Positions 5,171 through 47,550 of a DNA stretch of 64,000 nt are shown one piece after another; positions within the stretch are counted from its first letter, which is position 1, and every line of letters starts with the position of its first letter. The position numbers and the translations under genes were made by a program. Below the pieces are notes generated by a model. That model was given only the letters and a program-made list of their open reading frames with translations. It searched no databases and was not told the DNA's origin. The stretch comes from Antechinus flavipes. Taxonomy: Eukaryota. Location of the stretch: the NCBI RefSeq assembly GCF_016432865.1, contig NC_067399.1, positions 655,836,001 through 655,900,000 on the forward strand, read 5' to 3'.

Positions 5171-5414
5171 TTTTGCTTTGAATCCCCAGTATCTTTATGC
5201 TGGATGGATTGAATTCATCCCCTGGAAGATTACTGCAGTTTGGACTTTTTTTTTTTTGGACTCCTATTTATCAGTCCAAAGCAAGGGACAACAGAAGCTA
5301 AGAAAGGATGCTTTTAAAAATCTTACCTTTCCATAGTAGTAGGAAGGATGAAGGAGAACAGAAAATCAAAATAAACTTTACTAAGCAGAAAAAAAATACA
5401 TTTGAAGTTCTTAC

Positions 5415-5456
5415 CTTTGTGCCATTCAAGGGAGGAGTAATTATTGGCTCACACTC
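5415..5456 (-). CDS. HK1: HK1 sperm/testis-specific N-terminal coding exon 2 (ECEPIITPPLNGTK), phase 0/0
   Basis: Long AG-free pyrimidine tract tttctgtcttgtcttgtttttcttcaatgtttaag, then 42 nt GAG TGT GAG CCA ATA ATT ACT CCT CCC TTG AAT GGC ACA AAG, then donor gtaaga. The peptide aligns to recalled mouse HK1S DVEPKIRPPLTEEK (E-P-x-I-x-P-P-L-x-x-x-K). It ends in phase 0, as needed to join HK1 exon 2 (IDKYLY...). Confidence 0.82.
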
Positions 5457-8400
5457 CTTAAACATTGAAGAAAAACAAGACAAGACAGAAAGTAAAATAA
5501 ACTTTATTAAGCAGATTTGGATAGATGCATTGACAGACAATTCAGCCAGTTTTATGTCTATCAAATTCTTTCGAAGAAAGCAAATGGGCATATGGAAGGG
5601 TAGGAACGGGCTTTGGTTTAGGGCTAAAAGCTTTACATCCAGTGGCTCTAAAGAAGGAAAGGTCTAAAACTCTCCCTGAAAATAGCAGAGGTTTGACCAT
5701 TGCTGAACAATCAGACTTTCCTATGTCTTTGTACTGGCAGGGGACAGTTTAGCTTAGGGTTTCTTCAACTTGGGGCCTATAGGTCACAGAAGACCTCTGA
5801 GGGAATTTTGGAGAAATACAGAAAGAGCTTCCAGGTTCATTAGCTATTATATTAAATCCACTCTTTTTAAAAAGATTTATTTATTCTGAATTTAACACAT
5901 TCCAAATCAAATAAGCATTTTAATACCTCACTATAAAACAGAAGATTGTAGGTAAAACCAAGAATTTCTTTTATGTAGTGCCTATTTTCTTTTTTAGCTA
6001 AAATAGAGGAATGTCCAAATTGGTAGTTTCCCCGCTTTGCTTGTCCATTAGACTGTAAGATCCTTGAGGGCAGAATCTACTCATTTTTTTAAGAGAAAGA
6101 AACTGAGAGATTCAGTAATTTGCCCAGGCAGAACTTTCTATTTAAACCTGGAAAGGAATCTAAGAAACTGTCCAGTCAAATGCTTCTCTATCTACCAGAT
6201 GCTCAGAGGCCCAGGGTCCAAGATCCCATATAATAAGGGTCAGAGCCATTGTTCAGCATCAAAGTAGACAAGATGGTTGCCTCTTGGAGGAGATGGACCA
6301 AAGTGGAGTGGGGGACAGATGGGGTGGTATTACGACTTCTGATTATCTCACATGTAATTCACTTAATTCTAGAGCTTATTGTACTGGAGGAATTCTACTT
6401 TAAGCCCTCCCTCTCATCCCACTGACATCAGAAAGAATGAATAAGCTGAAGAAAGCCACTGTAGAAATTTAGCCTTCAGAATATTAATAGGAAACAAAAC
6501 CTACTTCAGTCATTTTAGGGATACAGGAACATGTCAGAAGCTAGATTTCCAGTCCAGAATTCTTACTGTCTTCTAAGTTCTTATTGTCAGAAGGAAGTCT
6601 ATGAGAGGGACAACCACAAGGATTCTGGTGATTCAGAAAGGTCAAAGGGTTCTAGAACCATCAAGCCAGAGGAGGCAGGGACTCTAAAAGTCATCTATTT
6701 CAACTAATTCATTTTACATAGAAGGAAACTGAACCTCATCCAGTGAAGGGACTGCCAGTGGTGCACAGTCCATAAATGTGGGATCTGAACCTCTGGCTGC
6801 CCTACAAACTAACCATTAGACAACACTGCTTCCTCAAAGTTCACAGGGTTAAAGGATGGAAATCTCCCTCATTTTACAGAAGAGGACATTTAAGTCCAGA
6901 GGTTAAATGACCAGCCAGAGTTCTCACAGATAGTGAGTGGGAGTCTGGGATTTGAATTTCAGCTCAAGAGTCTCCAACTCTATTTCTTTCCATGACACCC
7001 TATTGCCAGTTTGAATTACTACTAGATTCATTTTCATTCAGTCCCTTGGATTCACGTCACTAATAAGCCAGAAGCAGTTCAGTCAGGTCATCAAAAAGCC
7101 ACTTAAAGCAAATGGATTTTAACCTTCTGTCCTCCTTCTCCCCAGTCTTAAGGGTTAAACTAATTCTTTGATGAGCCTAGAGGGGTTAGAAAAGGGAAGA
7201 CGATTTAATATGATCTGGGGAAATTTTACAGACTTTTGTCACACCTGGAAGATGTTCTGGGATCAAACATGATCAAATTCAGGCAGTGGTGGGATGATGG
7301 AGTTTAAAACTGGGAAGAAACTTAGGGATCATCTAAGGTGACCAAAAGAAGGTAAAGGATAGACCCTAAGTAACACGGGATGAGAGCTTATATTTTGAGC
7401 TTTGAAAAGACCTTAGCGAGCTTCTCATTCAAGCTGCTCAATTTATACATGAAACACTAGTATGATCTGAATTAGAATCTGAACCCAGATTTTCTGACAG
7501 CAGATTCTGCAATCAGCAGATTTAGGAAGGTGTAAGACTGTCACAGGTTAGAAGGAACCTGAGGATAGAATGATGGGCCGGAGAACACTTAGATAAGGAG
7601 AGGTTGACTGTGGGACTCACTATATTCAGCTGTGACTATGGATGGAAAGATGAAGAACCCAAATGAATGACCGAGTGAATGGAAAGCATTTATCAAGTGC
7701 TTACTATGTATGTTGGAAAGAAATAACTAAAAAGGGGGAACAGCCTGAGCCCTCCAGGAGTTGAAACTGGGACACCACACAGGAATTATCACACAGATGG
7801 AGAATGAAACAATAGAGTAGTCCACTAACAAACCTTTCCCAGAGGCCACAGTGGGGTCTGATTTGATTATAATTTTCTGAGATTGAGATGGAAGGAAGTG
7901 AACGGAAGGGTACTTGTAAGGTTGCACAGCCCTATATAACAAGGGTGAAGAAGGGCTCTCTGGTCCCAGAAAGAGATGGCTGAAGGACCCAGCTGGCTCC
8001 CAAGGCTGTGGAAGTTCAGTTTGGAGGGTAGCTGAAGCAACAACAGGAAACAAGGGTGGCAAGGAAGAAGATGGTCAGCCCCTATGACTGAATCCCCACG
8101 AACACCAAAGTCATCCTGGAAATGATATATATTTATAACCTTTGGGAAGAGGAAGGGGGAAGTAAAGTGTTGAAATACTAACAATCTCTCTCTATAAAGT
8201 GAAAAATTAATGTCCAGAGAGAGATTAGAGTAACCAACAGGTATAAAGCTAGATGGTGTCAAAGCCAGGGAAACAATTCATTCTAATGACCTTTGGGTGA
8301 GCTCCCATTACATGACAGCCTGTGTTCCCAAGGGAACATGATCTCGGCTTTTATCTTAAGCTAGCTAGTGGTCTTAATCATCTGTCCATAGAGAGGCCCC

Positions 8401-10039
8401 TAGCATGTCATGGTAGAGACAATGCTAGCCTTGGATCCAGCAAGACTGATTCCTGATGGCTGTGTCACCCTGGGTAAGCTGTTTAATCTCTCTGTGTTCT
8501 AGGAAACTCTGTTCTGAGTTGTAGAGAGGGCGCCCACCCTTTGCTGGGAGAAGGGGCTGATTATATCCGTGAAATCACTCACAGTCACCTTTCCCTTTCA
8601 TTTCTTGAATGTGTTTTCTTTCCTTAATTAATTAGTAAGCTCCTTGAAGGCAAGGACTCTAATAATGAGTTCCTATTTATTTTTTAAAAAAGAAGAAGAA
8701 TTAAAGGTTTGCAAAGCACTTTCTGTCAAGTAGAAAGGTCGGGTATTATTGTCCCCATTTTACAGAATAGGAAATAGCCAGATAACTTGCCGGGAGTCAG
8801 GTGGCTTATGAGCTGTCCAGCCTGGATTTGAACACAGGTGTCTCGATTCAAGATCCAGGGCTTTCCCGAAGCCACGTCGTACCTTACGCATCTCTATCAG
8901 AGAAGGACGTTGCGAACTACTCCAGTTCAAACACAAGGACGAGGGTGAGAAAAATGGAATCAAGAAACAAGGCAGTTATCACACCTAACATGAACGGTAG
9001 GTGGCGCCACAGTGCACAGAGCTCCGGGCGGGAGTTCGGAAGGCACGAATGAGTTCAATTTTGATCTCAGTTACTTCCCAGTCGTGTGATTCTGGACAAG
9101 TCAACTACTTGCCTCAACTGTAAAATGGGGATAATGACGGCACCTCCTTCGTAGGATTGTTATGGTGATCAAATGAGATAATTTTTGTAAAGTGCTTAGC
9201 AGAGCGTCTGGCACATAGTAGGCACTAAATAAATGCTTATTCCCTTTCCTTAGAAGATGCTCATTAAAGATCCGTTGGTTCAGTTAAATAAATCATCCTT
9301 ATCTCTTCTGATATGATTATCTCAGGGATGAAACAATAGTCGCTGGAGACCCTGAATATATAGGGAAAGGAGTAATTTCTTGAGAAACCTGACCTAGCCA
9401 TAAAAATAACCGTAATTCACATTTATATAAGTCTTTAAGACTTCAAAGTATTTTCCTCATAGGAGGTCAAAAGAGGGGAGGGTATTATCTCCCCCTGACA
9501 GATGGACTTGGCCATGGTTTCCTAACTCAGGACTTAAACACTGATCTCTTGATTCTCTAAATCTATCACATTGCCTCTACTGCTCATTATCCCTAATAAA
9601 GAATGAACTAAGGGATAGACAACAGAACAAATTCGCCATCTCCTGCAGAAACGTAGCAGATATAAAACAGTGGCCACAACAAGGCTGCTCAAAAAAGCCT
9701 AGAAATCCCTCCAGTCATAAAATGCTTGACACCCTCACCAAAGTGGGGAGACATGGCAACCATGGACAATGTTGACTTAGCACTTAAACTCACTTATAAG
9801 ACATTCTAGAAGGAGGAAGAGGACTGCAGGTAGGAACATATCATATAATGTAGAACATATTTAACATCAGATTTTTCCAGGTGTTGGGTGGCTTCTCCCC
9901 CACCTCCTTTTTTATTATTTTTTATAAAAGATTGCTCTTTGGAAGGGTGAAGAAGGAGACACTTACTGGAAATGTAAGCAATATAAAGACTAGAGATATC
10001 AAAGCAAATGTATTTTAAGAAAATATTTTGGAAGATAAT

Positions 10040-11100
10040 GGTAGAAGATCACAAACAATAACAGTGATGAGTAGGGGAAGAGAAATTGAGTTTCCCTGAA
10101 AGTGAATCCTAATAAAACTACATCATTTCCAGGGTGTTGATAAGTGAAATAAGAAGAAATACAGCAAAGGATGAAAATGGAACAAATCTATTAGCATTTC
10201 TATAACAAACTATTTTCACTGGTGGAAGAATCATTCTAAACCCAAATGTTTCAGGTCCTGATAAGTTCTATGAACAAGTGGATATAGTGCTATGGGAAAC
10301 AAAAAGACATGGACTAAGCTAGAAAAGGAAATCTCTGTCAAGGGGGTGCAATTTTGAAAGCAATGAGAAATTCATTTTCAATATTTTTTTTTTCTGAGGC
10401 AATTGGAGTAAAGTAATTTGCCCAAGGTCACACAGCTAGGAAGTGTTAAGAAGCTGAGGTCACAATTGAACTCAGGTCCTTCTGACTTCAGAGCAGCTAT
10501 CCTAATTACCCCCATTTTCAAGATCTTTAAAGGAGGGAAAGATATTAAATGATAAGTGGGGATATCACAAACATTATTATAAGGGGGAAAAAGTGATCAA
10601 CAGAACATGTGCTCATTTTCTTATCTCCATCTTTCTTATTTTTATGAAAATAACAAATCAATAAAATTGATGTTTGCCACTTTCATGGAGGATTCTTGAA
10701 TAGAAGTCAAAGATTCCTTTTAGATGGGGAGATTTTCCAGTTGTAATAAGTAGGTGACATTGCACCAAGTGCACCAAACAGCAGAGTAGCAGACTCTTCT
10801 TTATGAAATCCCCAACCACTCAAAAGAGTTTGTCCTGACAATCCACACAAGAAACACCAAATGGATGAAGAACGCCTCTTGCCTAGCTTAGAACTTGCGA
10901 TTGTATTTATGGCCTATTGAATCTGTCCATCTGTACATATACTTTGGAAAGATATTGTAATGGACAGTGAGCTGATCCCTGAATGGAATCAGATAAAATC
11001 AGATTGGGTGGCTTGAACAAATTGGGGAGCACTTTCGGTGATTCCAAGAACCTCCCATGTTGCTTACATTTCTATTCTTTCTATGATGTCCTATGTGGCC
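10040..11100 (+). mobile_element. RTE-clade LINE fragment (marsupial RTE-like), interrupted by a WSINE1
   Basis: Conceptual EIPNHSKEFVLTIHTRNTKWMKN at ~10804-10872 resembles RTE reverse transcriptase; boundaries approximate. Confidence 0.6.
10384..10513 (-). mobile_element. WSINE1-type SINE
   Basis: ctgaggcaattggagtaaagtaatttgcccaaggtcacacagctaggaagtgttaag... with poly-T on the plus strand. Confidence 0.75.
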
Positions 11101-11407
11101 GTGAAATATGGAAAGAAGGAATAAATGATTGAAAAAGCATGTATTTAATATGATATGCCAGGCCCTGTGCTAAGCACTGGGAATAGAAATGTAAACAAGC
11201 AAGATAATTCTTATCCTCAGAGAGAGTTTATATTCCATTAGAAGATAACACACACGGATGTCCAGGAGGAATAAGAGAAATCAGAGAAAATTGTGGTTTT
11301 CATAGCCTTTCCCAGGATGGTCATGTAGATCTGCTATTAATTGAATAGCATGGAGTGAGTGGGCCAGGAATTGGAATTGGAGAACTGCAGAAAGTTACAT
11401 GATATAT

Positions 11408-12222
11408 CAGTATTTTCTTCTTTCCCCCATATTCGCGTTATGAATATCTGATCTCCTCTGATAGAATGTAAATTCCTAAAGGGGTGAGAGTGTTTTGTTA
11501 TCCTTGTACCCCCCCCCAAGTGTAATAAGTAGATACTTAAGAAATGCATTGTTGACTAACTAGTTAATTGATTTAGAATTGCAGAAAGTTGTATGATATA
11601 TGCATGTGTGTGTGTGTGTGTGTATGTATGTATATCTGTGTCCCAGCAAAATAAGATCAGTGCTCATCATTTACAATGCCAGGTCTGGAGTCAGGAAATC
11701 CCGAGTTCAAATCCAGCCTCAGATACTTACTAGATACTTACTTAGACCTTAGACTTTAAACTTCACCCTGTTTCCCTCAGTTTCCTCATCTGTAAAAAAC
11801 AGGCTGGCCAAGGAAATGGCAAAGTACTCCAGTAAATCTGCCAAGAAAACCCCAGTAGGGTCACAAAGAGTAGGACATGAGTAAAGAACTGAACAACAAC
11901 AATAAGGTGTGATGAGGCTGTGTCCCTGTGAAAAAGGAAGTTGTAAAAGTTCCTGAGATCCCTGCCAATGCTAAGTATGATGAGGACCTTGTATAATTTA
12001 CTTTCCCTCTCTGGAGCTCACTTCCTTTATTTAGAAAGTGAGAGGAATTATGCTAAATCAATTAACTAGTTAGTCAACAATGCATTTCTTAAGTATCTAC
12101 TTATTACACTTGGGGGGGGGGTACAAGGATAACAAAACACTCTCACCCCTTTAGGAATTTACATTCTATCAGAGGAGATCAGATATTCATAACGCGAATA
12201 TGGGGGAAAGAACAAAATACTG
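11408..12222. repeat. inverted repeat: arms 11408-11576 and 12053-12222, spacer 476 bp
   Basis: The reverse complement of arm 2 equals arm 1 except one substitution (11417/12213) and one homopolymer indel (C9 vs G10). Confidence 0.97.
11685..11905 (+). mobile_element. MAR1-type SINE inside the inverted-repeat spacer
   Basis: gagttcaaatccagcctcagatacttact core; aaggaaatggcaaagtactccagt...gggtcacaaagagtaggacatg tail. Confidence 0.7.
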
Positions 12223-13688
12223 TCAAAGTACATGTTTGGAAGGAAACAATAAGAGTCCCTTGGAAGATCTGAGCAAATCTTGAAGGAAACATTTTAAAGA
12301 AGTAAGGAACGGAAGGAAATCTCTTCTAGGCAAGGGGGCAGTCAGGACCAGTCATGGAGAAGGAAGATGAAGGGCTGTGTAGAAGCAGCCATTTGGACTG
12401 GAGCATATAGTACAGCAAGGAGCCTAATGGGTAATTAGGATGGAAGAGTAAATCAGAGTCAAGACATGAAGGATTGTGAAGAAGGCCGGAGATTCTTTCT
12501 AGCTCGAAATCTAGAACCCTGCGCTTCTTTGTATTCATCAATCATTTATCAAGCAAGGAACTCTGGATAGGTGCCTTTACCTCAGTACCTTAACTTAGTC
12601 CACTGCCTTTTATTTTCCTCATCTGGAAAAAGGGGGCAGAAGCAGAGACTTCTTTAGAAGAAGCTGCTCTAAAAGAGTAGATAGATTTATTTTACCTTTG
12701 GGTCAAGAGCCCATTTTAGGCTCTAGGAGAAGAAATCAAATGGAGCACAAAATATCTTTTAATTTATTAATTGCCAAATAAAGAAAAGGAAATCAACCCC
12801 AGAGAGGAGAGAAGGAGTCACAGGACCACTTTCTTGGCTTTAGTTTCTAATGAGCAGAGAACCACAGCCTCCAGCCACCATAGCAAGCCTTGGTGAGGAG
12901 TTAGCAATTGCCTGGGGCTGGAAATATCTTTGATCGAGAGGCCCAGGCAGGATTCCTAAGACCTGGAGCTCATTTAGAGCTCCTTTGTCAGCTCTTCTCA
13001 TTTCACAGGTGAGGAGGCAAAGGCCATATATGACAAAGGGAAAGCAAGGTTAACAAAAATGTTTTTTCTTTTTTTCCTATTCAAGTTTACAGACTCCTTG
13101 ATCTCTGGTCCAGGTTAAAAACCCCAGAAATGCTTAATCTTCGCCTGTGATCTGCCTGTGATAGACTGATTGATTGATTGGAAGCAAAGAACTTTGGGTC
13201 CAAAGTCCACATTTACTATTAACTGTGTTACCTCTGGCAAGCAGATTTACCTCTGTCCTCTGTAAAATGACAGGTGGTGCAGTGGATAGAGCATAGGACT
13301 GGGCAGTCAGGAAGACCAGACATTCCTTCCCTGGCTGTGTGAGTTCTAAGCCAGTCACCTCATTTCTTTGAGCCTCAGTTTCCTGATCTGTAAAATGGAT
13401 GCAAAAATACTGACTAGCCAAATGGAGCCACAACAACATAAAAAGCTCACCGTGGTCAAACTAGGAGGAAAGTCATGGACCCCTCTGGCAGTCATTCTGG
13501 TTAAGCCTATAGACCCCTTTTCAGGTTAATGATTTAAATGCAGAGGATTGGAATAAAAGCAAAGTTAGTGGACATTGTGATGTCATTTTTTCCCACCCAA
13601 GTTCACAGACTCCCTTAAATCTGCTCATGGACCCCAACTTCAGAATCCCTGATCTGGAAGTTAAGAAGGAATGCATAGGACAACTTAC

Positions 13689-13718
13689 ACATCCCAAACG
13701 ATGGCAGCTCTGTCCCAT
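13689..13718 (-). CDS. HK1: HK1 sperm/testis-specific N-terminal coding exon 1 (MGQSCHRLGC); whole exon 13689-13777
   Basis: Acceptor ctatcttctcttctttcctcctcaatctgaccttcaccag at 13778-13779. The 59-nt leader has an in-frame TGA and a strong Kozak (acaATGG). 30 coding nt end at a perfect gtaagt donor (13683-13688). MGQSCHR matches recalled human MGQICQR and mouse MGQNCQR. Confidence 0.85.
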
Positions 13719-15423
13719 TGTAGTTAATGGGAGGGTGGGCGATCTGGACCTCCGCTCCTTTCTCCTCAGTCAGCCAGCTGGTGAAGGTCAGATTGAGGAG
13801 GAAAGAAGAGAAGATAGACAGACTCAGGTTCTAACCTGTTTCCTACCTGCGTGCCTCAGTTTGTCCAAACCTCACCCTTGGGTTCTTCCCACTTCAAGAG
13901 GCTTTGATGCTAAGGGGTTCCCTGGCAGTTGACTGAGGATGGCCAATCCACCACAGACTGGTGTCTGCCAACAGACCACCATCCTTCCTTGTGGGAATTT
14001 CTATTTGTAGCCCATGGTTAGGAACTGCTCTCAAGGACATATTGTCCTTTTCACCAACTAAAGACTTTAAAGGGTCTTAAAGATAGAGCTAGAAGGGACC
14101 TGAGTAACTATCTCGCCCAACCTTCTCATTTTACAGATGGGGAAACTGAGATCCAAGTCAGTTAAGTGATTTGTTCAAGGTCTTCCTGACTCCAAATCCA
14201 ATGTCCCATCTACTACATCATTATTCTTGGCCTAGTTTAGCGGGAAAAACACTAATTTTCCAGTCAAATAATCTAGGTTAAAATCTTGTCTCTATTCCTT
14301 ACTAGCTACAAGCTCCCTCAGTCAAGATAATTGATCTCCCCAGGCCTCAGTTTCCTCATCTGTAAATTGAGACAGTGAGACTAGATGGTCTCTGAGGTTC
14401 CCTCCTGTTCTGAACCTCTGAGCCCATTCTTCCTAATAGAAAGGATAATTTCAAGGAAAGTATCAAACAGTGGGTAATTATCATTTCTGTTTTGATTTGA
14501 CATATATTTGGTGACTTTCTAAAATGTCCGATTGCATTTAAATAATATTTGATTTTTATTAATAATAAGAATTAGTTGCATTTCCAGAAAAATTTCCAAC
14601 CAATAGATAATAGGAGATTGTGAAAGAGAAAAAGGGCAGAAGCATCCTGCCCATTGGAGGAAAGACACTGGGAATTTAACATTTGACACAGAAAATCCGC
14701 AGCATTATCATGAATGGGTCATGTATGGAAATGAAACGGGGAAAAAATATATTCCTCTGACAAAAGGCTCCACGCCCATTTGCATAGTGAATTTTTGGGC
14801 AAAAGATAGTGAATGAAGGGATTTGTGACCATGCGGTTGATGTAACTGATGACAGCTAAATAATACTCTAAAGTTTGCAAACGGTACTGCAGGGACCATC
14901 ATTCCCATTTCACAGATGACAAAATTGAAGTTCAGAGAATATCAATGACTTGTCCAAGTTCATACAGTAGGGGAGATGAAATCAAACCTACATCTTCTAA
15001 CTTTCAAGTCTAGAACTCCCAAGTCATTATCCCATTATCCCATACTGCCTCTCAAAAAATCACAACAAGTATGTTAACCACCACATCAGGACCCTTTTGG
15101 AAGCTTCCCACTGAAGGCAGATAATCCTGGCAAATGGACTGAAAACTGACATTGAATGATAACAGGATTGATTTAAGAATAATAAACGTCACGGTGTTCT
15201 CTTGTAGTCTACTCTTGGGAAATGACTTAGACAGGCAGACATCCTGTGACTTTTTCAGGGATGCAGGACTATATTCCCCCTTCCCCACCCGCCCCGTCTC
15301 CAGCATCCTTCCATCTGCTGTCTTCCCTACTAGAATGTAACTCATGGAGACCAGGAATTGTCTTTTTTACTTCAATTTATATTCTCAATGCTTAGTTGCA
15401 CTTTTCATAGACTAAGCATTTAA

Positions 15424-16539: not shown

Positions 16540-17340
16540 TGCTAGCACTGCTGTCCAGAAGGCTACTGTCTAGTAAGCACTCCTCCTCCTCCTCTCCCCC
16601 TCCCTTCATCCTCACGGCCGACCCCCAAACTGTTGTCCTGGTGGATCAATCTGGCAACATCTCCCTAATCACCCCCCATCTCCATTCTTTCTCTTGGGGC
16701 ATTGACCCAACCCCAGAGCAGGCCCTTCTCATTTCAACTCTTAATTACTGTCAGAGCTCTCTTCTCTCCCCACTCCAATCCATTCTTGATTCAGCCACCA
16801 AAGGGATTTCCCTAAAGCTCCTAAAAAGCTCCACTTTTTTCTAAAATGACTATGACATCTCCTATCAAGTAAACTCCAGTGGCTCCCTGTCACCTCCAGG
16901 ATCCAATACAAAATGCTCTTTTTGGCATTCAGCTCCCCTTCACTTCCTTCACTTCACACCTTACTCCCCAACATGTACCCTTCAATCCAGTGACCCTCAC
17001 CTCCTGGCTGTTCCATCTCTCAGCTCCGGGCATTTTCTATGGCTATCCCCCATGCCTGGAAAGCTCTCCCTCTTCTGCTCCCTTTACTTAGACCTCTCTG
17101 CTTCCTTTAAGTTCCGACTAACATCTCACCTCCCAGAGGAAGCTTTCCCCATCACCTCTTCATTTCGTTGTCTTCCCCCTCAATCATTTCCTATCTGTTC
17201 CACATGGAGTGCGCCTGTCCACATTCTATGTGTTTACATATCCATCAGATTGTAGGCTCTTGGAGGACAGGGACTATCTTTTGCCTTTTTTTGCATCCCC
17301 AGTCTTTCACAGAGTACGAAATATTTACTGACTGACTAAT
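16540..17340 (+). mobile_element. L2 LINE 3' fragment
   Basis: cagtggctccc...ggatccaatacaaaatgctc...tagattgtaggctcttggaggacagggact...ttactgactgact tail. Confidence 0.7.
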
Positions 17341-17999
17341 AAATATAAACAATAACAAAAACAACAACAATAGCTAGCATTTTAGCTTATAATCAAAGGG
17401 AAGAAATAGCAGAGAAGAGAACTGAGGATCTATTTTCCAACAATGTGGTCTTGGTCATCTTCCTGAACCTTGTGGAGTAGAAACGACAGCTCCTATAGAT
17501 ACTCCTATCCACAAGTACACTCAATTCCTCTAACCAATCAATTAGTTAAGAAGCATCTGTTAGCAACTATTTTGTATCACTTGCTAGGGACAAAGACAAA
17601 AGTAGCAATGCTCGCCCTCAAAATGCTCACCCTCAAAATGCTCCCTTTATATCAGGGGAGACCAGCATAGAGCAGATATATAAAAAATAAATCCCAAATT
17701 ATTTGGGGCTGGAGGGGGTTCAGGAAAGGGTTTCTGCTGAAGGTGGCCTTTGCACTGGGTCTCAAAGAAAAGAAGAAATTCTAAGAGGCAGGGACGAGGA
17801 GGGAGTGTGTTCCTGGCAGGAAGCACAGCCAATGCAATGGCCGGGAGATGGGAGGAACAAAGGGATCAGTTTGAGAAAGGACAGTAATGGATAATGTTGG
17901 AAAGGTTTGATGGGGGCAGGATGGACAGGTTTCAGAAGCCAGAGGGTTGATAGGTTAGCCTGATGGGAATAGGGATCTGACATTCGAACGTATATGTTA

Positions 18000-18792: not shown

Positions 18793-19959
18793 CTCCCTGA
18801 AGATTTTTAATCTCGCTCATTGAGATAGTTCATTCCACTTCTGCTCAGCACCAATGGCTAGGAAGTTCTTGCTTAAATTAAGAGAAAAACTTCCTTTTTG
18901 CAAAATGATGCCAGAACTTCTAGGACTGCCCTCTCAGGCCAGGTGGAAGACTTTAACCACATCCTCATCCTAAGTCCTCTCTTCTCTAGTCCAAACATCT
19001 CCAGGAGCTCCTAAAAAGGATCTTCCTATCAGCCAATCAAGAAACATTCATAAAGCACCTACTAGGTGTCAGGCACATGGCAAAATCTCCAGACCCTTCC
19101 CCATCAGGGTATTACTTACTCCGGGTCACTCAATGTTGAATACCCAAGATACAGTGCATCCTCTAGGAAACACCCCACCCCCACCCCCACCTTGGAAGTC
19201 AATGCTCTGGACAAAAGGCCTGATTGTTCTCTCCCAGTTAAGCCCCTCCCACTTTAGAGAGGAAACTGTGACCTGCCACCCAGAGGAAGACCAGTAACGA
19301 AGAGGGGGCAGGACTGGAATCTGAAGGGGTGCAGCTTCCCTGCGGAGCCCCCCTTGCCTCTCACATACCCGTTTCCGGTTGCCTTTTGTTATAAGCTGTT
19401 TGTTTGAGTTTTCATTTTTCCACAAGGACAGCACATGCCCTCTCCTGTAATCCCCCCAAGTTTTCTTGGTGGGAGCAGGAACCCTGGATCTATTTGCCCT
19501 TTTCCTCGTCCGTCTGCTGCCACAAAGCTCCGGGCAAAAGTCCTTCAGTTAGTTGGTGGGTGCTCTGATAACAGAAGGACAAAGATGCATTTGTCAGAAA
19601 AGCAAGGCTCTCAGAAGGGCCTGGACTGGCCTGGCTAAGCCAGTACAGGCAACAACAACAAAAAAAAAGGGGACTGGCTGGAGGCGTGTTACAATGGTCC
19701 AGAGAGGAAATCATGGGATCCACTATGTGACCTTAGGGAAGTAATTTCCATTTCCCCCACCTCCTATTCTGTGTAAAATGAACAACAGAGCCATAATTGG
19801 GAATTTTTGCCCCCGGGGACAAGCAAAGTAGCAAGAATAGCTCAGTTGCTCTTAGTTATAGCTCTGATGAAGTTTGGATTAGATCATTTGATGTTTATAA
19901 GTCAGTTTCAGAGGGGTGAGTCTCTGAAATGGATGGGAAATAATAATTTTTTATGTTTT

Positions 19960-21420: not shown

Positions 21421-23919
21421 TTTGTCAGAAACACTGGATGGAAAAATTAATAGGAAATATTATATGTACTTTTCACTACCTCAAACATTTCCTTCAATTA
21501 TTTTAAAATATGATTCTGAGAAAAGATCACAGGCTTCACCAGAGTACCAAAGGGGGTCCATGAAATTAAAAAAAAATGAATCCCTGCCCTGGAGGACTTC
21601 TGGGGTTCCTTATAACCCTAAATCTGCAGAAAGGAGTAGCTCCTCAACGTCAATAGAGTTTCTCATTTGATTCACACAACGGTCCACACACCAGGCAGGG
21701 CAGGAACTCATGGAATCCTCAAACGCCAGGACTTTCTCATAGCTGGTGGTGTTTTCAGAAATACTTTTGTTTAATCCATTGGGGAGAAGGAGAAAGTTGA
21801 GTTTCAAGTCATTTTTTCAGTCATGTCTGACACATCACGATCCCATTGGGAACTTTCTTGGCATTTTTTTTTCATTTCCTTTCCTAGCTCTTTTAAGATT
21901 CTAGAAGGGGAAAGTGAGGCAATCAGGGTTAAGTGACTTGGCCAGGTAAGCTGGTAAGTGTCTGAGGCCAGATTTGAACTCACAAAGATGAGTTTTCCTA
22001 ACTCGAAGTCCAGGAAGGGATTGTACAAGGTGGTGGTGAGGGGCTAAGCCTTTCAAGACTTGGAAGCAGGAAGCTCAGAGGGGACAAGATACTTCAGTTT
22101 GATAAGTAGCATAGGACCTGAGTTCAAATACTGACCCTAACATTCCTGATATAACCTCCAGCTATTCATTTAGGTCTCAGTTTTCTCATCTATAAAATGA
22201 GGCAATAGGACTATATGCCTCTAAGGTCTTCTCCTGCTCTAAATCAGTCAGTCTAAGAAGTCCTTTTGCATTTTTAGGCAATTCTCCACTGGGTGGAGGG
22301 AGACCCCCTTGCAGTGACTTTGGTTCTAGATGCATTTTCTGGAATCAGAGAATCCTGGAAGTGGAAGGGATCTCAAAGCCCAACTAATCCAACTTGAACA
22401 GGAAATCTTGTCACCATCACTCTTAAAGATGTCATGACTGACTGAACGAATAAGCATTTATTAAATGCTCACTATATACCCAGCATGATGCTAAGTGTCA
22501 GGGTTACAAATACAGAGCTGAAGAGATCACATGGCCACGCTCAGTTCGTCCTTTCTCAGATCCTGCAGCCTTTACTATCTGGCAGGGACTTTGGAAGGGA
22601 TCGTCTGAGATAAGATCAGGTAGGGTGAGTCTTCCAGCGATGGGGAGCTCATTACTTTTCCAAGATCATACTTAGCATTAGAGCTCAAGGAGACTTTGAA
22701 GATCTAATCTTTCACTTCATAGATGAGGAAACTGAGGATCAGGACACTGCCCCAGGAATCAAACATTATCCTGCTTCTCCACATTCTATGGTCCTCCGCA
22801 TGGCCAAGAATCACACAAGATGGTGGTTGACTCCCAGGATGTAGAAGTGGAAAGAACTCAGAGAGAACTCAGAGCCCCTACCCTGGTGGAGAAAATGTCC
22901 CCGCATCTCTGGACCTGACTAGTCCCAAAGAACTGCGGATTTCAGGGTCTGAGGAACTGGGTTCAAATTCTGATTCTACCACTTATTACCTGTGTGACTC
23001 CTCTGGGCCTCAATGTCCCTATTTGCAAAATGAGGGGTTTCATGGTCCCCTCCAGTGAGAACTTTATGACTATTCATTAACCTAGACAGTTACTTTTCTG
23101 AAGAGCACAACATGTCCACTCCCCCCCCCAAAAAAAGAAAAGAAGTAGCCCCAGAAGACCTGCCACACTCACTCACTGTGAAATGTCGCCTCTGAACCAT
23201 CCTCAGCCAGAGGAGCCTCAGGACCGAGGAGCCGAAGGGCAGGATCCCTGGCTCGGGGAACTCTCGCAAGTGCCCAGTTCATTCACGGGTGCCGATGAGC
23301 CTGGGAAGGGCCCTTGCCAGAGCATGTCCTGGTCAGACAGATGAACTCCATCTCCCGACAGCTGAAAGACCCGGTCAGCTCCGGGGTCCCCCCAACCCCT
23401 TTTCAGCACCAGCCTGCAGATGTGTATTGAACTCAAGCCTGGCCAGCGCTGGAAGCCAAAGACTTGCTAATCTCGAGGGAAAAATGTTAGCAATGTGCTC
23501 CCACAGTGTCCTGGCCTGGGAATCACGGAGTGGGGAGAGAGGAGGAGGAGGGGCTGGCTTCTCAGTCCATATCCCCCGACCCCCTCCTCCCAGGGCTGGC
23601 CGGTCCCCTTCGGGTGGCCCTTGGACCACTGGGGAATAGGAATGGCCGGCCCCAGCTGCCCGCCTCTGCTCCATCTCCGGAGAGGCCCCCTGGATGCCAA
23701 GAAGTGACTCGGCACTCTGACCAGTGAAGGCCTGGAACTGGCTCCTGCTCTCCATCTGCTCAGGACAGCCCTTTGTGAGAAGTCCAGTATTGTCTGGGAC
23801 ACAAAACATGGCTAGGACCCAAAACACCAACATTTAGCAGTAAATGATGAGCATCTGTCCTGTTCCAATCGCTCAGTGCCCCCCAAATCCACTCCCTCTT
23901 CATCTTCACTTCTCAGAAG

Positions 23920-26872: not shown

Positions 26873-27042
26873 NNNNNNNNNNNNNNNNNNNNNNNNNNNN
26901 NNNNNNNNNNNNNNNNNNNNNNNNNNNNNNNNNNNNNNNNNNNNNNNNNNNNNNNNNNNNNNNNNNNNNNNNNNNNNNNNNNNNNNNNNNNNNNNNNNNN
27001 NNNNNNNNNNNNNNNNNNNNNNNNNNNNNNNNNNNNNNNNNN
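26873..27042. other. assembly gap (170 N)
   Basis: Run of N. Confidence 1.
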
Positions 27043-46039: not shown

Positions 46040-47550
46040 CTTTTTTCAAGGAAGAATAAATGGGGGTCACGTTAACCACGTCATGATGACGAACAAGTCA
46101 TTAAATTGCTTTGAGCCCGGTCAGTCTGTAGAATGGGAGGCGGGTTGTTGCCTTCTCTCGCTCAGTTCTGGGCTCCCCAACATTTCCCGGACGCTTCCGC
46201 CACGCGCTCTCTATTCCACTCCACCCCACTCTGGCCGCTCCTATCCCTGGCCGGACCGTCTGGGCGCATCTCCCGTTTCCAGCTCCCAAATTATGTGTGG
46301 CGGGCCCCTACTGGAATGGAAGCTTCCTGAGGTCAGAGAATGTCCTCTGGTACTCCCGGCGCTTAGCACAGTGCCTGACATAAAAATAAGTCCCAAGAGA
46401 AGCTCGCTCCATCCGCCCTCAGTGATGTGACAAGGAAACACTAAATCTCGGTGCGTAAAGAAAAGTAAGCTGCTGGTACTAGAATATTTGCAGCTAATTA
46501 TAGATGTGTAAATAGTGTTTATATAAATATTCCCTCTAAAGCCATTTTCAAGTGAATTATTGTGAAAACAAAATTCTTCCCTGGTGGCTAACCTGATAAT
46601 TTAGATCTCTCCAAACAGAGCTCTTCCCGTACCATATAGTCCATCACCAGTCCATGGTCAGAGCCTTCCCACCTTAGCAGGGTTCCCTTCTCTTCAGCTC
46701 ATAATCTATTGACATAACCCTTAAAAGCCCTGAGTCTTCTCCCTACTATAATGGGGCCTCAGATTGGATAGGGGTAGTGGGGGGAAGTCAGTCTCTTATC
46801 TCAAATGTTTTTGTTGAGACTCTTGATTTTTCTGAGCATATGAAAACATATCAAAAAGAGGTTTGCAAATCTCTTTTTTGCTAGCACTTAATTTCTCTTT
46901 CTCCTCCTCTTTCCCTTTTATTGCAAAGATTTAAAACTATTCTGAATGGCAGTGGTGAAAGTAAGCAGCCCTGATTTTCCCCTGCTCTTAGTGGTAAAGT
47001 CTCTAAGGTTTATCCATTATGTGTAATGCCAGCTCTTAGTTACAAATAAACATGATCACAATGAAAATAAATCTTTTGGTTCCTATCCTTTTAAAATATT
47101 ATATATATATACACACACACATACATATATATGTACACACACATACATATATATATATACACATATGGGGGGAGAGAGAGAGGCAACTAGATGGTGCCAT
47201 ATATATGTTTATATATATGGGCAACCATCCTTTAAAAATTGTTGTCCAAGATACTAAGGTGTGCTTCAAACTCCCTTTTTGGGGGAGGGAATGTCAGCCA
47301 GTTCCTGAATTGTGCCCCAATATAAGCCTGCCAAACCTTCAGCTCATAGAGTCAGGGTTGGAAGGGACTTTGGGAGCCCCCTAATACGATCCCCTCATTT
47401 TACAGATAAGGAAACTGAGGCAGGGGTAAGCTAAATGGTTTGCTGAAGGTTACCCAGAAATGAGTGGCAGGACCAGGCACCAAGCCGCCCCTGCCAGCTG
47501 CCCCTTCCTCCTGGAGCTGCAGGAGCTCACCCCCAGCCCCTCAACTTTAC

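Follow-up and report, generated by a model that had tools for sequence, protein, structure and literature searches.

The HK1S form of hexokinase 1 (HK1), specific to spermatogenic cells, begins with a leader encoded by the first two coding exons, which take the place of the porin-binding exon (PMC4736023). In the human protein, whose N-terminus reads MGQICQ, Gly2 is myristoylated and Cys5 is needed for membrane localisation and taken as palmitoylated; Gln3 and Gln6 are conserved and are also required for localisation (PMC4736023). The human exons are named T3 and T4, with T3 encoding 9 amino acids, and the leader begins MGQICQRESATAAEK (PMC11050395). The mouse leader, which carries the motif 15-PKIRPPLTE-23 (PMC4736023), is described as 24 residues long and is encoded on coding exons 3-4, and mice with a 6.4-kb deletion of both exons lack HK1(S) in testis and sperm and have impaired fertility (PMC11285943). 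No paper on marsupial HK1S was found in the literature, and the main text of the kangaroo sperm proteome paper does not mention HK1. Here we describe two small minus-strand exons, A and B, in a 64,000-nucleotide stretch of the marsupial Antechinus flavipes (contig NC_067399.1, positions 655,836,001 to 655,900,000; hereafter the window, to which all positions refer unless another locus is named). We consider it likely that they are orthologous to the two coding exons at the HK1 5′ end which is specific to spermatogenic cells (human T3/T4, mouse coding exons 3-4), as the original prediction for this locus had proposed.

Exon A (13777-13689, minus strand) is an internal exon corresponding to T3 in human, to coding exon 3 in mouse and to the first coding exon of camel HK1. 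It follows an acceptor ending in ...ccttcaccag/ at 13778/13777 and opens with 59 nt of 5′ untranslated region (UTR; 13777-13719, minus), within which there is an in-frame TGA at 13772-13770 (minus). The coding part of 30 nt (13718-13689, minus) reads MGQSCHRLGC from an ATG at 13718-13716, placed in the context acaATGg with A at -3 and G at +4, and the donor TGT/gtaagt stands directly after the tenth codon. Across an intron of 8,232 nt (5457-13688, minus) lies exon B (5456-5415, minus), which corresponds to T4 in human, to coding exon 4 in mouse and to the second coding exon in camel. Its 42 coding nt read ECEPIITPPLNGTK between the acceptor ...ttcaatgtttaag/ (tttaag/) and the donor AAG/gtaaga. 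Both leader junctions are in phase 0, giving the joined reading MGQSCHRLGC+ECEPIITPPLNGTK and a full predicted leader of 24 residues, MGQSCHRLGCECEPIITPPLNGTK. Exon B closes on a complete codon, as joining to HK1 exon 2 requires. The coordinates and sequences of both exons in the original prediction were correct, and the phase-0 joining, the strong Kozak context and the upstream in-frame stop which it described were all reproduced. Its description of the splice sites as clean held in part, since sites are present at all of the positions given but are only moderate to good by weight-matrix rank. The four of them fall at the 92.6th-99.7th percentile when compared with all GT or AG sites in the window, using a rough matrix which serves for ranking only.

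Other splice-like sites are found close to the two exons. In the leader intron, a strong acceptor-like site (cttaacttccag/) is present at position 13653 (minus), 36 nt from the exon A donor. Beyond exon B, 88 nt from its donor, a second donor-like site, ggaaag/gtaaga, at 5326 (minus) has an equal score but a different frame. These two sites could act as splicing competitors of the leader exon sites. Exon B is also flanked by a direct repeat of ~27 bp (GCTTA.TAAAGTTTATTTT..TTT at 5486-5512 and 5360-5386, minus) with a spacing of ~125 bp. A duplication of exon B by way of this repeat was considered and set aside as not clear, the intervening sequence of the two copies failing to align.

Two placental HK1S leaders served as comparators, one from camel (P0392; Camelus ferus EPY83756.1), for which the genomic locus was also at hand, and one of mouse type (P0393; UniParc UPI00004CAA86). 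HK1 N-terminal fragments were reached by a search with the N-terminal piece of a marsupial HK2, and the mouse-type entry by a region search on the camel leader, which returned that one further entry only and no full-length HK1S identifier. The camel protein contains MGQNCQRGWGIAAEKPIQPPLTESK and then IDKYLY, its leader being split MGQNCQRGW/GIAAEKPIQPPLTESK, while the mouse-type protein contains MGQNCQRGQAVDVEPKIRPPLTEEK followed in the same way by IDKYLY. The mouse-type entry has the published mouse motif at its published positions and its leader is identical to the mouse leader which the original prediction had given. For human, the comparison rests on the first 15 leader residues as given in a paper.

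The predicted window leader resembles that of mouse in its MGQxC start and in a second half of the form ExPxIxPPL...K, where 7 of the 14 residues are identical. In both species the leader is spread over two small coding exons several kb apart and ends in a Lys, which in mouse directly precedes IDKYLY. When the second halves are set side by side (window EPIITPPLNGTK, mouse-type EPKIRPPLTEEK, camel EKPIQPPLTESK), all three end in Lys, and the window sequence, which keeps the PxIxPPL motif, is related to mouse 15-PKIRPPLTE-23. The window leader differs from that of mouse in its length (24 as opposed to 25 residues), in having His6 rather than Gln6 and in its extra cysteines at positions 10 and 12. 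The human T3/T4 leader (HKI-ta/tb, CCDS7289) is of the same kind, although its first coding exon encodes 9 residues and that of the window 10. Global alignment of the window 24-mer gives 12 identities to the mouse-type leader and 12 to the camel leader, with a score attained by none of 20,000 shuffles; the 12 of 24 identities to mouse claimed originally were thus recovered with an independently retrieved sequence.

With exons as short as these, and with a match that was picked post hoc by the earlier reader, the pair might be nothing but chance reading frames with splice-like flanks, unrelated to HK1S. Scans of the entire window make this explanation highly improbable. By chance, 64 kb read on both strands should contain each of the motifs MGQ.C.R and EP.I.PPL ~0.01 times, yet each was observed once, the former at exon A and the latter at exon B. 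Every position in all six frames of the window was also scored against the placental leader sequences. For MGQNCQR the best of 89,707 positions was 13718 (minus), with a score of 31 (mean -7.2, sd 5.3; z ~7). Scanning 64,903 positions for the 14-residue second half of the placental leader gave 5456 (minus) as the best, with a score of 29 (mean -13.5, sd 7.4; z ~5.7), and this top-scoring 14-mer has a GT directly after it. Both exons are therefore the top-scoring sites of the window for placental sequences that were obtained independently, and their strand, order and interval are the expected ones, with donors homologous to those of camel. A DNA comparison of the camel first coding exon with both window strands also placed exon A best (score 17, next 12). 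Exact look-up of eight window reading frames around the leader exons in the protein collection found none of them present.

The genomic comparison with camel was made using the HK1 locus of Camelus ferus KB016813.1 (L001), in which the first coding exon has its ATG at 13750 and its donor after 13776 (9 codons), the second coding exon occupies 17214-17261 (16 codons, 3,438 nt beyond the first), and HK1 exon 2 starts at 46603, preceded by cag (cag/ATT) and in phase 0. Exon A and the camel first coding exon agree at 22 of 27 coding bases between ATG and donor; exon A has one extra codon, and its GTAAG stands at the identical position. Exon B and the camel second exon share the donor AAG/GTAAGAA; an intronic AAATGT motif four bases beyond it and part of the pyrimidine tract are also common to both. 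The window lacks an AG where the camel acceptor, tttaag/GGTATAG, would align, the AG used being 6 nt downstream, and within exon B two 3-nt indels compensate each other relative to camel. The extra codon of exon A, the acceptor shift of exon B and these compensating indels explain the length difference of 24 versus 25 residues base by base. The codons are divided 9+16 in camel and 10+14 in the window, and the leader intron is 3.4 kb in camel as opposed to 8.2 kb here. The predicted layout of a leader on two exons thus agrees both with camel genomic DNA and with the papers on human and mouse (PMC11050395, PMC4736023, PMC11285943). The camel gene model is itself faulty: the annotation divides HK1 in two and, starting at a predicted ATG at L001 10001, gives the leader an in-frame upstream extension. 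The locus also carries a run of N at 17735-17769.

The ATG, the reading frame, the two donors and the codon for the final Lys have all been retained while the surrounding DNA does not align at all. This pattern bears on whether the similarity could reflect conserved regulatory DNA, an enhancer or promoter element of HK1 or HKDC1, in which the frames and splice-like sites would be incidental. In favour of this, the other conserved blocks of the interval have no clear coding content (see below). However, the conservation of exon A runs from the ATG to the donor with an indel of 3 nt which is in frame, and in exon B the indels offset one another, leaving 14 codons and an intact donor. Regulatory elements do not keep a reading frame and splice sites intact like this. 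We consider the regulatory explanation very unlikely, if slightly less so than chance. The homology of the two exons to the placental exons, like their position, is directly observed.

On the HKDC1 side, the position of the leader exons also agrees with the placental arrangement. The 3′ exons of HKDC1 (38319-63204, minus) were recognised from hexokinase motifs, exon reading frames and a homologue search, confirming that HKDC1 lies upstream on the same strand, with hexokinase exons read on the minus strand from ~63.2 to 38.3 kb. A search with the HKDC1 exon frame 58801-59235 returned hexokinases, and the last exon, read through its final 26 residues to a stop codon at 38321-38319 (minus), matches the end of vole HKDC1. 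Exons A and B lie 24.5 kb and 32.9 kb downstream of this stop, respectively, on the same strand. The somatic mitochondria-binding (porin-binding) exon 1 and HK1 exon 2 were not found within the window, and would therefore lie further downstream, to the left of it. The somatic porin-binding exon was not found in the camel locus either.

Between HKDC1 and the leader exons, only two other collinear similarities were detected when this interval was compared with camel, both upstream of the leader exons and in the same order in the two species. Block 1 (23426-23509, minus), 14.8 kb past the HKDC1 stop, is a conserved non-coding block with 79% identity over 85 nt to camel L001 2848-2931. The camel block in turn matches positions 56041-56433 of the vole locus (L002), ~7.6 kb past vole HKDC1, and a three-way alignment of window, camel and vole reveals a common core. 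Block 2 (19522-19596, minus), likewise non-coding, is 77% identical over 78 nt to camel L001 6071-6146, and a pyrimidine tract with a CAG acceptor-like site is common to window and camel. Block 1 may represent a promoter or an untranslated first exon of HK1S transcripts, and block 2 may be an untranslated upstream exon or promoter of the sperm transcripts. The collinearity of the blocks in window and camel, with camel block 1 also matched in vole, supports a single conserved order that runs from HKDC1 through the blocks and the leader exons to HK1 exon 2. The vole sequence, comprising HKDC1 with a 10-kb flank, contained no called HK1 gene and no leader exons. Taken together, the homologous exons, the donors common to both species, the position relative to HKDC1 and the collinear blocks support the identification of A and B as orthologues of the HK1S leader exons.

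A number of points weigh against this identification or against its functional extension. The exons are read from genomic sequence, and HK1 exon 2 lies outside the window. At the DNA level exon B is not distinctive in comparison with camel, its local score being 12 where the window maximum is 14, and only 19 of its 42 bases are identical in an ungapped comparison. By the rough matrix, three of the four leader splice sites rank only at the 92.6-94.6 percentile; the exonic side of the exon A donor (TGT/) is weak, and at -3 the exon B acceptor carries an A. The PKIRPPLTE region is poorly conserved among placentals (PMC4736023), for which reason the match to it is weaker evidence of function than of homology. 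Finally, Gln6 is conserved in 13 mammalian sequences and a Q6A mutant of human HK1S loses its membrane localisation (PMC4736023), whereas the window has His6.

The last of these points, together with the moderate splice-site scores, also feeds a different explanation, in which A and B are true orthologues but do not provide this marsupial with a sperm-specific, acylated HK1: the exons might be used in other tissues, be included rarely, or direct the enzyme elsewhere due to His6. In human, a part in disease of the peripheral nerves has likewise been proposed for transcripts with the T3/T4 leader (PMC11050395). Yet the ATG, Gly2, Gln3, Cys5, the open frame, both donors and the phase-0 junctions are all intact where the surrounding DNA no longer aligns, and intact coding and splice features amid unalignable DNA point to continued selection on a coding, spliced exon pair. 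We regard a loss or change of role of this sort as unlikely, while giving it appreciably more weight than either chance or regulatory conservation.

If A and B do encode an HK1S leader, then transcription would start at a promoter between HKDC1 and exon A, and the transcript would be spliced through exon A and then exon B, whose donor would join HK1 exon 2 beyond the window such that somatic exon 1 is skipped. The predicted product would be HK1 with the 24-residue leader in place of the 21-residue mitochondrial porin-binding helix. The splicing of this transcript, its expression in testis and the acylation of its product are what we infer for the marsupial version from the comparison with placental HK1S. 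Set against the MGQxCQ motif, the MGQSCH of the window has Gly2, Gln3 and Cys5, with residue 6 being His. Gly2 would thus be available for N-myristoylation and Cys5 for palmitoylation, as in the human protein, and the enzyme would presumably be directed away from mitochondria to membrane and flagellar sites, where it would feed sperm glycolysis.

Met-Gly...Cys N-termini also occur in Src-family kinases and G-alpha subunits, in which a myristate on Gly2 and a palmitate on a nearby Cys together give stable membrane binding. The mechanism is alike (compare the discussion in PMC4736023), but they have no sequence relationship to HK1S. HK1S also lacks the Ser/Thr6 of the classical myristoylation consensus, and depends on Gln3 instead.

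A marsupial HK1 protein model containing the leader was not obtained. The search with the HKDC1 exon yielded only HKDC1-like or HK2-like full-length identifiers, and a region search from an HK2-like protein (P0004) gave HK2 and one glucokinase model but no HK1. A more far-reaching claim would be that the leader pre-dates the marsupial-placental split, is absent from marsupial gene models, and has an altered lipid-anchor code in which His6 is accompanied by Cys10 and Cys12 as potential palmitate acceptors. We put this combination forward tentatively, and in its entirety it is more doubtful than not.

Two further features of the window were noted. An open reading frame (ORF) at 26834-26742 (minus) begins IDKYLY and was tried as HK1 exon 2, but was rejected since the rest of it is dissimilar and its scan score is far below that of the real exon. 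It adjoins a run of N at 26873-27042 and is most likely a chance occurrence in AT-rich DNA. Within an HKDC1 intron there is a GC-rich tandem array (~52800-56000, minus) with repeated PDGPIRQ.GKLRRPGG units in several frames, which accounts for the GC peak of the window at 52-56 kb.

The exon pair extends a known system in a way that is well supported but not surprising. It adds one more lineage to those with an orthologue of this alternative 5′ end; the system is not of a new kind, and the understanding of HK1S is left unchanged. Annotators are provided with two defined micro-exons to include in any models that lack them. As a natural variant, with His6 and extra cysteines, the leader may be useful for probing which residues the acylation signal needs. 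HK1S is required for male fertility in mouse (PMC11285943), and its unusual N-terminus relocates this enzyme, the first in glycolysis, from mitochondria to the membrane and flagellum of the sperm. The HK1S isoform probably arose before the marsupial-placental split, and the presence of the same two exons here, with the lipid-acceptor residues Gly2 and Cys5 intact, would date this rewiring of sperm glycolysis to before the lineage of Antechinus separated from placentals.

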